A stretch of DNA of 64,000 bases from Phaeosaccion multiseriatum (GCA_965112735.1 OZ218965.1:1116001-1180000); one strand, 5' to 3'. Numbered from the stretch's first letter, positions 24,096-41,610 are shown. A program made the numbers and translations. Notes: generated from the letters alone by a model not told the origin.

Positions 24096-27000
24096 TCACG
24101 GCTCCACCTCTTCGCAAGCAGGCTCTCCCGCGCACATGTTGATGATTTCACACGTGAGTGTGGGGTTGTTGGTCAGGTATTGCTGGGCACCTGAGGGATT
24201 GGTAATACAGAGGGAGGGAGGGGGGGGGGGGTGGAGGGAGGGAGAAAGGGGAGGGCGGAGGCGAGGGAAGGACGGAAGGGGAGGGAGACGCAAGGACAAG
24301 GACAAGCACAGGGGGTCGGAGGGGGGGTGGCAGTGAGCGAGGAGGCGAGGACAGAGAGGGAGGAGAATGCGGCACTGTTCACCGCGCACGCACGTATCAC
24401 GCACACACGCACGTATCACGCACACACGCACACACACACCCACACACCCACACACACACCTGCTTCGAGGAAGCATGCGCGGCAGTCTTGGCCTAGGCCG
24501 AAGAAGTTGCAGAGAATGCCATCAAAGGAAGTGCCTTCTTCCGAGCAGGTGGGGTCGCAGTACAGCTCTGTGGGTGTGCGGCAGGGGGGAAGGGAGCGAG
24601 AGAGTTCGAGAGGGAGGGAGGAAGGAAGGAAGAAAAGAAGGGAGGAAGGAAACGAAGAGCGAAGGGAGGAAGGAAGGAAGGAAGGATGGAAGAAAGGAGG
24701 AAGGAAGGAAGAAAGGAAGGAAAGAAAGGAAGAAAGAAGGAAGAAAGGAAGGAAAGAAAGGAAGAAGGAAGGAAGGAAGGAAAGAAAGAAGGAAGGAAGG
24801 AGGGAAGGAAGGAAGGAAGGAAGGAAGGGAGGAAGGAAGGAAGGAAGAAAGGAAGGAAGGAAGGAAGGAAGGAAGAAAGGAAGGAAGGAAGGAAGGAAGG
24901 AAGGGAGGAAGGAAGGAAGGAAGGGAGGAAGGAAGGAAGGAAGGAAGGAAGGAAGGAAGGAAGGAAGGAAGGAAGGAAGGAAGGAAGGAAGGAAGGAAGG
25001 AAGGAAGGAAGGAAGGAAAGGGTGGGGCGATTAGTCGGGGCAGACATTCACAGAGTCGAGAGTCAATCAAGTGTCTGAGACGCTAGAGGGTGGGCGGGCT
25101 GAGAGATGGACGTGATGCCTCCTCCGTCCGAAGCTTTGAAACAAACCTTCCTTGACCACACCCTCCCTCCTGCTTGCTACCCACAGGCAGCTCTTCTGTC
25201 CCGGTCGGTCGGCCGGTCGATCCGTCTGTCTGTGTGTCTGTCTGTGTGTCTGTCTGTCTGTCTGCCTGTCTGTCTGTCTGCCTGTCTGTCTGTCTGTCTG
25301 TCTGTCTGTCTGTCTGTCTGTCTGTCTGTCTGTCTGTGTATCTGTCTGTCTGTCTGTCTGTCTGTCTGTCTGTCTGTCTGTCTGTCTGTCTGTTTGTGTG
25401 TCTGTCTGTCTGTCTGTCTGTCTGTCTGTCTGTCTGTCTGTCTGTGTGTCTGTCTGTCTGCCTGTCTGTCTGTTTGTCTATACATCTCTCTACTCTCTCT
25501 CGCGCGCTCTATCTGTGCGACACCACGTACCCTTTCGTACCCTTACGTACCTTTATGGTTGTCATCCAGATAGGCCATGTCCATGGGCGTGGCGACGGCG
25601 TAGCAGTCCGAAGCCGTGGTGCAACCCCCAGAGAAGGGTGTTTCGGGCCTGCCTCCCACAAGAAGAGAAAGAAGAGGAGGGGGAACAGAAGAGGGGGGAG
25701 GAGAGAGGAAACAGAGACATGAGGCAGAGTTTGAAGTCACAAGCGAGGGTAGAGAAGCACATACGCTAATCTCATACGCGCACATCCACGTCCACACTCA
25801 CCCATACGCAGGCACGCACTCACAGGCATACGCACGCACACACAGACGCACACACACACATACAGAGCCGCGCACACACGCACACACTCTCAGTACTACT
25901 GCCTGTGTGAAACTGAAATGATCGAACTACCAGAAACACCTCAATGCTGGCTGAACAAGGAAGGGTGTGTTGCTGTGTGAGAACTGAGTACTTACGCTGG
26001 CGAAGGGGCAGAGGTGTCAAATCCCTCAACGACCTCGCAGTCACCGCCGTCAAACAGGCAAACTTCCGTGTTATATTCTCCTCCGTCGCAGAAACCGTCA
26101 CCAATCCACGATCTGAGGGGGTGAGGAGCAACCAACGGCGAGAAAAGGTTCAGCAGGCGGAGAGACCATCACAAAAACACACAAACTAAAACAAAGTGAT
26201 TTTCATTCGAGCAGCCCTCTCTGTCCCTGAGGGATGGAAGAGGGATATATGCATGTGTGTGTTGTGTGTGTGTGTGTGTGTGTAAGGATAGCCGAATGAT
26301 TAGTGGTCGTACTTACGGGATGGATACCACGCAGCCTGGAGGCAGTGCGGGTGCTGCTGCGGGGCTCGACGTCTCAAATCCGATGCAGTCACCACCATCA
26401 TACTCTGTGAACATGCACAATCACGACGAGAGGCGAAGCGAAGGGGAGGAGTCATCTAAGCGAGGGGCAGAGAAGAGCAGAGTAGTGTCAAGCTGTTTGG
26501 CTCACAGCTGGCGAGATACTTGAGCTGAAAATGGAGCTACCGCCCCCACCCATCCACTCACTTACCGCATACTTCCGTGTTATAATCTCCTCCGTCGCAC
26601 GCGCCGTCGCCAATCCACGATCTGAGGGGGTGAGGAGCAACCAACGGCGAGAAAAGGTTCAGCAGGCGGAGAGACAATCACAAAAACACACAAACTAAAA
26701 CAAAGTGATTTTCATTCGAGCAGCCCTCTCTGTCCCTGAGGGATGGAAGAGGGATGTATGCATGTGTGTGTTGTGTGTGTGTGTGTAAGGATAGCTGAAT
26801 GATTAGTGGTCGTACTTACGGGATGGATACCACGCAGCCTGGAGGCAGTACGGGTGCTGCTGCGGGGCTCGACGTCTCAAATCCGATGCAGTCACCACCA
26901 TCATACTCTGTGAACATGCACAATCACGACGAGAGGCGAAGCGAAGGGGAGGAATCATCAAAGCGAGGGGCAGAGAAGAGCAGAGTAGTGTCAAGCTGGT

Positions 27001-39100: not shown

Positions 39101-41610
39101 GATAGTACTTACGGGAAGTCTACCACACAGCCCGGAGGCAGTACCGGACAGTCACCGCCATCATACCCTGTGAACACGCACAATCATGACGAGAGGCGAA
39201 GCGAAGGGGAGGAGCCATAAGAGGGCAGGGTAGAGCAGAGGAGTGTCAAGTTGGTTGGCTCACAGCTGGCGAGCTGCCTCTATCCCACCCCCACGCCCTC
39301 CCGCTGGCCCAAGGCACACACACACACACACACACACGCACACGCACACGCACACACACACTTACGCCCACTTCCAGTTTCAGTTTATAAGATGATTTAT
39401 ACACTCACTCACCGCATACTTCCTGGGCATACGCTCCTCCGTCACAGTCACCGTCACCAATCCACTCTCTGATGGGGTGGGGTGCAACCAGCGGCGATAA
39501 CAGGTTCAGGCGGAGGCAGAGACAAGCCATAACAAAACAGAAGGAGGGTCTGAGTAACGCCCACTCTTAGCTACTCTCCCTCTCTGTCTCTGAGGAATCG
39601 AAGAGGGATGTATATATGTGTGTGTTGTGTGTGTGTGAACGAATGGAAGAGCGGCAGCTGCATGATTGGTGATTGTACTTACGGGTTAACTACCACACAG
39701 CCCGGAGGCAGTACCGGACAGTCACCGCCATCATATCCTGTGAACACGCACAATCATGACGAGAGGCGAAGCGAAGGCGAGGAGCCATAAGAGGCCAGAG
39801 TAGAGCAGAGGAGTGTCAAGCTGACACGGCTGCAAGGTAGAGCTACCACCCACCCACCCACCCACCCACCCACTCACCGCATACTTCCGTGGCATATTCA
39901 CTTCCGTCACAGTCACCGTCACCAATGTACGATCTGATGGGGTGGGGTGCAACCAGCGGCGATAACAGGTTCAGGCGGAGGCAGAGACAAGCAATAACAA
40001 GAACATGAGAGAGGGGAACTGACTTATTCGAGCAACGCCCACTCTTTCTCTCCCTCTCTGTCTCTGAGGAATCGAAGAGGGATGTATATATGTGTGTGTT
40101 GTGTGAGTGTGTGAACGAATGGAAGAGGGACAGATGGTACTTACGGGGTGGGTACCACACAACCGGGAGGCAGTGGTGCTGCCGAGGTCGTCTGCAGCTC
40201 GCGGTCGGCCTTGCGGAAGGGCTTGTGCTTCTTGTTCTTCGTCTTCTTGTTCTTCGTCTTCTTGTTCTTCGCGTGTGCAGCAGCAGAGGGGAGCTTGCGA
40301 CTTCCGCGGGCGATAGCATTAACGCTGCCGGTGGTGGAAACCAAGGAACAAGACAAAGCGACGGCCAAGGCGGGGAGGATCGAGACACAGAGTGAGGAGG
40401 TTGAAGCAAGTACTTGGTGGGGAGAACGGAGGGTGACGGCGGCAGCACCACCAGGAGTAGGCAGCCGCCGTGGAAACATTCAGTAGGCCAGGTCGGTCTG
40501 GCCGTGTCTCAGCACACACTTACCTTTCCAGGTGCTTCGTGCCCGGCTCTGCGACGAGGGCGTCGCCATACTTTAAGGGGGCGGAGAAGGTAAAGCAGGC
40601 CAGGTCCGCAGCAGAATTACTCACGGTCACCTGCAAGTGGGGGCAGGAGGAAGGCAGACGGAGGGGGGAGGGGAGGAGTGGCGTTGGCTGGAGTTGTGCA
40701 GGAGGCCTTAGCTAGCTACTACAATAGATCTGGTGACGACGGGCGCGGTAATTATCATCAATCTCGCAGACAACTACGTGACGCTTTGTTGTGGTTGTGG
40801 TAGCTAGCGCTTCAGTAGCTAGACGACGCACGGTCGGTGCCGTGGCTGGTCTTTCCATTACCACACGAACGTCCTCCTCCTCTTCCTCCTCCTCGCTCCC
40901 CCTCCTCCTCCTCCTCCTCGCTCGTCCTCCTCCTCGCTCCTCCTCCTCCTCCTCCTCCTCCTCCTCCTCCTCCTCCTCCTCCGCCTCTTCCTCTCACCTT
41001 CACCGCCCCTTTAGTGCCCAGGTCCTGCTTCAACTCCGCGCCGGCAACTTGAATCTCGCTGTAGGACGTGCACGCCTTGTACATCGATGAGGTATGGGCT
41101 GGGTCGGCTTCAATGCTGATGATGGTGGCACTCGTTCGATCACGCATCCTCATGGCGTCGGCACTCTTTGGATCGACACGCTTGGCCGCCGCACGTTCCT
41201 TGTGAGGGTTCTGGGAGGGAGCGAGGGAAAGGAGAGGGGCGAGCGAGGACGTCAGGGTGAAGACCGGCCGGGCGGGGTGCAGCAGCAGAGGCGCGCCAAA
41301 CAGTGACGAACAGCCAGGCCAAGTCAACCCCCACGCAGGCCAAGAATGCACCAAGCAACGAAGGGGCGTCGGGTGGGCCGTCACCAGGCGATGCACCTCA
41401 GCCGACTCCTCATTGTTGCCCAACTCTCCCATCGCTCCCTTATTGTTTCTTTTTTTACGCTTCTCATTATTCTTCCTCCTCCCTTCTTTTCCACAAGCAA
41501 CAACTCACGTATTTTCGGGTGACGATTTTCTCCTCGCCGCTGGCCCCCACCACCCCCAGGGCTGCGAGCGGCAGTCCCAGCAGCAGCAGTGTCTTGCCCA
41601 TGTTTACCAT
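33103..41610 (-). CDS. Secreted LNR repeat protein E2: 9 modules, SDTLAPSPA stalk and a C-terminal Cys-rich domain
   Basis: Signal [22 protein letters not shown]. 5' exons 41509-41610, 40998-41210, 40524-40630, 40145-40324. A cassettes (left coordinates) 39878, 39413, 38841, 38360, 37869, 37353, 36848, 36419, 35927. B cassettes 39683, 39113, 38646, 38074, 37619, 37095, 36637, 36177, 35474. Three 3' exons paralogous to E1; stop at 33103-33105. Confidence 0.85.
33680..34940. repeat. (GAAA/GGAA)n and long (GTCT)n intronic microsatellites of E2
   Basis: Directly visible. Confidence 0.95.
35476..35690 (-). repeat. Coding 27-bp minisatellite, (SDTLAPSPA)x7 plus one degenerate copy
   Basis: gcaagggtatc(a/g)cttgctggcgaaggt repeats inside the last B exon of E2; E1 has a single DTSAPSPA. 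Confidence 0.92.

Follow-up and report, generated by a model that had tools for sequence, protein, structure and literature searches.

To our knowledge, brown algae and their relatives are without the classical immune receptor families of plants and animals, and the only variable receptors proposed there so far are intracellular leucine-rich repeat (LRR) and tetratricopeptide repeat (TPR) proteins from shuffled exons. The ROCO-LRR and NB-ARC-TPR arrays of brown algae (PMC3341825; Teng et al. 2024, PMC11378527) consist of small tandem exons with constant phase and similar introns, lie in tandemly duplicated genes, combine a conserved scaffold with a handful of exposed residues that evolve fast, and have been proposed as candidate recognition proteins. 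The same features, including the candidate role, recur in two neighbouring genes, E1 and E2, on the minus strand of a 64,000-nucleotide (nt) stretch of DNA from Phaeosaccion multiseriatum (GCA_965112735.1, OZ218965.1:1116001-1180000), referred to as the window. By motif and profile comparison, E1 and E2 are predicted to encode four-cysteine LNR-like repeat proteins of the stramenopile Notch-domain family in the genomic style of the ROCO and NB-ARC arrays. They would extend the systems already proposed by an LNR scaffold that is extracellular and stabilised by calcium, and a few surface positions of which show signs of fast change. Our preferred reading, to which we give a probability of about 0.7, is that both are ordinary, tandemly duplicated protein-coding genes for LNR proteins, the arrays of which grew by unit duplication and the transcripts of which are spliced constitutively.

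The differences from the brown algal arrays are also clear. The repeat of E1 and E2 is an extracellular module of the disulfide and calcium type (LNR) rather than an intracellular LRR or TPR, and no signalling domain is attached to it. Each module is put together from three pieces of two alternating exon types, with exon borders offset from module borders, so that cassettes could be skipped only in pairs. For Ectocarpus, the main argument for dynamic shuffling of ROCO genes was the presence of LRR exons within introns and in inverted orientation (PMC3341825), whereas the window holds no intronic, inverted or inactivated spare cassettes in E1 or E2.

As to the module itself, Notch-domain families of extracellular proteins are known and have undergone lineage-specific expansion in Ectocarpus (10.1101/307165; PMC3879662) and Saprolegnia (PMC3681718), where they are surface-exposed or extracellular. 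Metagenomic relatives, perhaps diatom-like, with many modules per protein share the four-cysteine consensus PxC..V..P...GDGxCDGGxYNTxEC.xDGGDC. Many Notch-domain relatives carry transmembrane or other domains, whereas E1 and E2 apparently have LNRs as their only domains, joined by mucin-like linkers. The LNRs of the Notch negative regulatory region, PAPP-A and GNPTAB share profile-level homology (E ~1e-8 to ~1e-5), the DGGDC motif and the spacing of the retained cysteines, but have six cysteines instead of four; since E1 and E2 are without a heterodimerisation or protease domain, an autoinhibitory role as in Notch cannot be assumed. A lineage-specific burst of LNR-like domains with four cysteines was described in the copepod Oithona nana (PMC8301441), in secreted proteins that consist of LNRs only; it went along with tandem duplications, and the domain bears signs of selection. 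This is an independent expansion in an animal, with mostly one to few domains per protein and no exon-cassette arrays reported (PMC8301441). Dscam1 likewise uses tandemly duplicated exons for variants of one structural unit in an extracellular recognition protein. There, mutually exclusive exon choice through docking and selector RNA pairing has been proven by RNA data; for E1 and E2, known from DNA alone, a search in E2 found no selector pairing, and all cassettes of a gene fit one linear open reading frame (ORF). In a literature search, no description of a split-cassette exon structure for LNR proteins was found.

Anatomy and identity of the split LNR modules

An earlier annotation of the window (the sequence-only reading) had described two arrays of alternating micro-exons and proposed that they form a diversification system. 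Cassettes were placed by six-frame motif scans together with an explicit search for open segments bounded by AG...GT and with explicit exon models. The DNA is eukaryotic, with about 57% GC, and rich in microsatellites; in the six-frame scan the motifs IGDGxCDGG, [FY]DGGDC and PPGC were confined to 26054-40170 on the minus strand. There are 16 A exons, fifteen of 56 nt and one (37417-37353) of 65 nt, all 2 mod 3 in length and running from phase 2 to phase 1, so read that one leading base and one trailing base enclose 18 or 21 codons. The 15 internal B exons measure 55, 58, 85, 88 or 127 nt, all 1 mod 3 and running from phase 1 to phase 2, with two leading and two trailing bases around the codons; a B-type exon also closes E2. 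The 16 A and 16 B cassettes proposed earlier, open and with canonical splice sites, were thus recovered as 16 A exons, 15 internal B exons and one terminal B-type exon. All 31 internal cassettes are open with AG...GT borders, and joined in genomic order they give open reading frames in both genes.

Each internal module consists of the tail of a B exon (PPGCxVxxP), an A exon (xxIGDGxCDGGxYxxEVC) and the head of the next B exon ([EG][FY]DGGDC), and the Pro/Ser/Thr/Ala linkers between modules fall into three length classes. The exon models agree with the proposed three-piece assembly and its phases; the splitting extends to all internal modules, and only the first and last modules of E1 are unsplit. 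Splice acceptors are uniformly CAG and donors GTGAGT or GTAAGT, distributed by exon type (GTGAGT after A exons, GTAAGTAC after B exons), and introns span 140-245 nt.

Three profiles, one each for A exon, B head and B tail and all extended into the splice-site flanks, were run over the whole 64-kb window. Each matched 17 times, always on the minus strand within E1 and E2, with E-values of 1e-25 to 1e-9 and one weak B-head match (E 0.002) in the fused last exon of E1. The cassettes are clustered far beyond chance. Every match is a used exon, and the scan found no extra, orphan, inverted or broken cassettes in the window.

A (GGGT)n tract opens 11 of the 16 A-to-B introns, 4-18 nt past the GT (35878-39871 and 27047-28957, minus strand). 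It fits a G-quadruplex motif on the coding strand, and its length differs among units; it could enhance splicing as a G-run or be prone to recombination. A GT 12 nt farther downstream, present in several units, would serve as an in-frame alternative donor.

The LNR identity put forward earlier was supported at two levels. Both unsplit modules of E1 (29646-29798 and 25998-26111) scored above the gathering cut-off of Pfam Notch (PF00066), with 21.8 and 24.2 bits against 21.2. In a scan of 1.84 billion cluster representatives, 890 proteins passed E<=1e-3 and 352 passed E<=1e-10; they have as many as 21 modules each and the module consensus YPxCxVxxPxxxGDGxCDGGxYNTxECGxDGGDC. Identity to the best of these representatives is 40-46%, their sources being metagenomic contigs. 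Protein searches with two short fragments, the ORF of the unsplit E1 module and E2 exon 1, gave no match within the length window of the search. Against LNRs of known structure, family profile A1 matched Notch3 (1.4e-8), Notch1 (2.6e-8), Notch2, PAPP-A (7e-6) and GNPTAB (7e-5), and a single-sequence search was weak (E 0.13). On this homology the modules are LNR domains. Only four cysteines per module are invariant and the canonical six, forming three disulfides, are absent, so the modules were classed as four-cysteine LNR-like and not as canonical Notch LNRs. Judged by spacing, the pair missing relative to Notch1 LNR-A is presumably the second and the fourth.

The D and G of DGGDC are unchanged in all modules of the window. 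In a 62-sequence family alignment D33, D36 and C37 of this motif are invariant, together with the flanking G35, and the GDGxCD aspartates are nearly so. The acidic calcium-site motif (D/N ... DGGDC) is present, and calcium binding is predicted from it. The E1 and E2 proteins are probably secreted, O-glycosylated and extracellular.

Growth of the arrays and rates of change

E1 and E2 are paralogues in a tandem segmental duplication with a period of 9-10 kb. Its flanks match at 78-85% identity, and downstream of both genes they carry the same microsatellite blocks, of AGGA and of GTCT. In both genes the repeated unit comprises A exon, intron, B exon and intron over 429-572 bp (TRF periods 458 and 467), and unit identities range from 97% down to 71%. 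The identity matrix and the tree agree that units mainly group with their neighbours: units 6 and 7 of E1 are 97% identical, E1 units 3-5 are 90-91% and E2 units 1-3 are 85-92% identical. Farther apart, E2 unit 4 pairs with unit 6 (87%) and unit 5 with unit 7 (85%), which implies that a two-unit block was duplicated. E2 unit 8 is 84-85% identical to E1 units 1-2, a likeness best read as a trace of the ancestral array. The pattern as a whole bears the signature of repeated unequal crossing-over over evolutionary time, which would have occurred mostly after the gene duplication. The earlier suggestion of diversification by recombination is thus supported for evolutionary time, over which single units and a block of two were duplicated in tandem; the spare cassettes that would go with ongoing shuffling are absent from the window.

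Averaged over pairs, A exons are 79% identical, A-to-B introns 80% and B-to-A introns 76%. The copies are young, and this is why their introns resemble each other as closely as their exons do; introns and silent sites have drifted equally, with about 1.7 synonymous changes per synonymous site against a unit tree length of 1.66 substitutions per site. Intron conservation was considered as a sign of function and rejected, intron divergence being equal to synonymous divergence. Phases and splice sites are identical because whole units were copied, so the phase locking needs nothing further; this and the conserved introns are the automatic result of young duplications of a two-exon unit and do not speak for a mechanism.

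Within the exons, the rates differ strongly between positions. Framework codons (P, G, C, D and the DGGDC motif) have a ratio of nonsynonymous to synonymous rates (dN/dS) of ~0.07, and over all codons the proportion of nonsynonymous differences (pN) is 0.16 and that of synonymous differences (pS) 0.29. Parsimony changes were counted per codon and compared with those in 219 intron triplets (mean 3.8, maximum 12). The x of GDGxC (codon 16) changed 15 times, the last x of PPGCxVxx (codon 8) 13 times, the first and the second residue before IGDG 11 times each, and one further tail codon 10 times. Two codons thus exceed all 219 intron triplets, and 5 of 26 codons have at least 10 changes, a level reached by the top 5.5% of intron triplets. 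A within-codon test of nonsynonymous against synonymous changes was not significant (best P 0.06). The counts are read as real but modest evidence for diversifying selection at positions predicted to be exposed. Hypervariability, as claimed for the modules at first, applies to a few codons that are faster than introns, but not to the framework, which is conserved.

The preferred history starts with an ancestral LNR module split by introns ahead of its IGDG and FDGGDC segments. Within these two introns, unequal crossing-over would have copied the A-intron-B-intron unit repeatedly, singly and once as a two-unit block, in most cases after the 9-10 kb gene duplication, and every copy would have inherited the same phases and splice sites. 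The transcript would most likely be spliced constitutively, from each exon to the adjacent one. Selection would hold the scaffold (Cys, Gly, Asp, PPGC, DGGDC) and let or drive a few exposed positions, the x's of PPGCxVxxP-xx-IGDGxC, to change fast. With a scaffold that is kept and exposed sites that are fast, the array would act as a fast-evolving multivalent binding surface, which might serve adhesion, wall or matrix interaction, or recognition. Diversification would then proceed across generations by duplication, loss and point substitution, and not within an individual.

Several points weigh against this history or parts of it. The start codon of the E2 model is missing from E1, which means either an error in one or both of the 5' models or decay of E1. 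Alternative isoforms with differing repeat sets are annotated for the ROCO LRR arrays of brown algae (PMC11378527), and some pair skipping in E1 and E2 would thus be unsurprising. The fast-codon counts used one tree for all sites, the sites were picked post hoc, and gene conversion would inflate the counts. An AlphaFold model of one 51-residue module reached a mean pLDDT of 65.5 and had no Foldseek match in the PDB, an uninformative result for a domain of this size. The statements on expression, on the 5' exons and on constitutive splicing all derive from DNA.

Splicing and rearrangement as possible sources of diversity

Combinatorial splicing was weighed as an alternative: regulated or stochastic skipping of A+B or B+A pairs would yield many proteins that differ in module number, linkers and chimeric modules. 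As the sequence-only reading had stated, the phases are compatible, so that each B exon joins any later A exon and each A exon any later B exon in frame, and a chimeric module would retain the scaffold of cysteines and calcium site. Its freedom of skipping holds only for A+B or B+A pairs; skipping of a single exon shifts the frame (A 2 mod 3, B 1 mod 3). The 610 routes counted for E1 and 2584 for E2 are correct arithmetic (the Fibonacci numbers F15 and F18) but purely theoretical and not evidence, and phase compatibility itself is an automatic by-product of unit duplication. The alternative LRR-exon isoforms annotated in Ectocarpus ROCO genes (PMC11378527) are a precedent, and the (GGGT)n G-run by the donor in 11 of 16 A-to-B introns might modulate splice-site choice. 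However, the splice sites are uniformly strong and the introns short, from which efficient neighbour-to-neighbour splicing would be expected. Docking or selector complementarity was not found: a search for intron-intron pairing in E2 gave only CA/TG microsatellites as inverted repeats, and hence no Dscam-like selector system.

The sequencing runs found to match the locus come from one sample; they are genomic, and none is RNA. Contigs from four runs of one sample over E2 (5,351 letters) cross exon-intron borders, for example at 40076-40444 and 36312-36486, without splice joints, which identifies the runs as genomic. Combinatorial splicing is possible in principle, the DNA offering nothing beyond what any tandem two-exon duplication would, and it is considered unlikely.

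Apparent joints in these contigs were examined as evidence of rearrangement or splicing and rejected, as their sides measure 21-30 nt with foreign letters between them and they are best put down to other paralogous loci or graph artefacts.

Somatic or clonal rearrangement of cassettes in the DNA, leading to individual-specific receptors in the manner of VLRs, has been published as a hypothesis for brown algae on the basis of Ectocarpus ROCO genes (PMC3341825). Highly similar tandem units and (GGGT)n tracts of the G-quadruplex type could favour recombination at this locus too. However, orphan, inverted or inactivated cassettes that could serve as a donor pool are absent from the window, the divergence of 3-29% between units points to an evolutionary time scale, and the contigs of the sample have only the short-sided joints typical of paralogous loci or graph artefacts. 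Rearrangement of this kind is extremely improbable here.

It is also very improbable that the LNR arrays are substrates of a dedicated diversification, whether through pair-skipping isoforms made per cell or through recombination at the G-run introns that varies cassette order between clonal lineages. If true, a stramenopile alga would thereby possess a repertoire for extracellular recognition that differs between individuals. The diversification system proposed at first is unproven, and only its evolutionary part, duplication and fast surface codons, is supported. Isoform or clonal diversity, if shown, would make the locus an independent invention of a repertoire system; otherwise it is a clear, conventional repeat expansion.

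Gene layouts, 5' ends and neighbouring features

E2 (minus strand, 40479-35470) was modelled with 19 exons, namely exon 1, nine A exons, eight internal B exons and a B-type last exon, which give an open protein of 568 amino acids (aa). The predicted protein has a hydrophobic, signal-like N-terminus, then a Lys-rich stretch and nine LNR modules with Pro/Ser/Thr/Ala linkers. Exon 1 (40479-40145) begins with the ATG at 40479 and ends in phase 2 with the B-type tail PPGCVVPT plus 2 nt. It is followed by A1 (39878-39933), B1 (39683-39737, 55 nt), A2 (39413-39468), B2 (39113-39167, 55 nt), A3 (38841-38896), B3 (38646-38700, 55 nt), A4 (38360-38415) and B4 (38074-38200, 127 nt), which encodes a long Pro-rich linker. 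The second half contains A5 (37869-37924), B5 (37619-37676, 58 nt), A6 (37353-37417), B6 (37095-37182, 88 nt), A7 (36848-36903), B7 (36637-36694, 58 nt), A8 (36419-36474), B8 (36177-36264, 88 nt) and A9 (35927-35982). All of these A exons have 56 nt except A6, with 65 nt and a 3-codon insertion. The last exon (35470-35744, 272 coding nt) has a B-type head, then a 27-nt tandem repeat (x 7.8) that gives about 7 copies of the 9-aa repeat APSPASDTL at the C-terminus, and then the stop codon.

E1 (minus strand, 25995-30102) comprises the LNR part and a homologue of E2 exon 1, and has nine LNR modules. An exon with one complete unsplit LNR module and a B-type tail (29647-29793, its 5' border provisionally placed by a CAG acceptor) is followed by seven A and seven B exons on the same strand. 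The A exons, all of 56 nt, are A1 (29438-29493), A2 (28964-29019), A3 (28448-28503), A4 (27988-28043), A5 (27525-27580), A6 (27070-27125) and A7 (26566-26621). They alternate with B1 (29181-29265) and B2 (28705-28789) of 85 nt, B3 (28239-28296), B4 (27783-27840) and B5 (27325-27382) of 58 nt, and B6 (26820-26907) and B7 (26317-26404) of 88 nt. In the last exon (26112-25995), which is the one with 24.2 bits to Pfam Notch, an A part and a B head are fused without an intron and followed by a short tail and the stop codon.

The first and last modules of E1 (29647-29793 and 25995-26112) are without one or both of the introns that split the internal modules. They are either ancestral intron-free modules or the result of precise intron loss.

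At the 5' end of E1, the homologue of E2 exon 1 (30102-30434, minus strand) has ACG (30434-30432) in the place of the ATG, followed by a frame-shifting indel upstream of the conserved hydrophobic segment, and its PPGC tail is lost. Splicing from a putative GTGAGT donor after 30102 to the CAG acceptor that precedes 29793 would bring the exon of the unsplit module back into frame. The ACG could be a loss of the start codon, or a sign that the ATG of E2 is not the true start.

These changes bear on a further explanation, in which one of the two genes, E1 rather than E2, or less probably both, would be a decayed or silent relic of the segmental duplication. The lost ATG, the indel and the missing tail speak for it, and E1 may be impaired. 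However, E1 has kept all 14 of its cassettes and its two end exons open, their splice sites intact, although its units differ by up to about 25%, and the framework dN/dS of ~0.07 argues in the same direction. In addition, a conserved signal-peptide-like exon upstream of both genes could supply a start. Decay is considered quite unlikely.

The upstream ORFs of this pair lie about 1.1 kb before each LNR gene, at 41509-41610 for E2 and at 31766-31879 for its paralogue before E1 (both minus strand). They share a GTGAGT donor and differ by an in-frame 12-nt indel, and both encode MVN[MT]GKT and a Leu-rich core, followed by GEEKIVT or GDEKIVT. They could be the genuine first exons of the LNR genes, or small genes in their own right. 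The signal-peptide-like exon ends in a phase 0 donor, and no convincing acceptor was found for splicing it in frame to the Lys-rich exon, the in-frame candidates being weak AAG sites. As the upstream exon could not be linked and the 5' end of E1 is damaged, the secreted status and the 5' ends of both genes are given as predictions.

Microsatellites accompany both genes. Blocks of AGGA (86-102 copies) and GTCT (64-180 copies) follow each of them (24611-25479 and 33679-34949). Upstream of E1 a microsatellite has expanded to (CTC)105 with 99% purity (30833-31148), and the E2 homologue (40872-40993) consists of about 40 imperfect TCC copies.

Elsewhere in the window, an open frame of 1,453 codons on the plus strand (15754-20115) lies in DNA of strong GC skew (+0.33 to +0.35), has no Pfam match and may be a low-complexity or repeat-rich coding region. 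Pfam matches identified one bromodomain ORF and two ankyrin-repeat ORFs among the frames at 56227-58431 (plus strand), 60602-61795 (plus strand) and 62917-63921 (minus strand).

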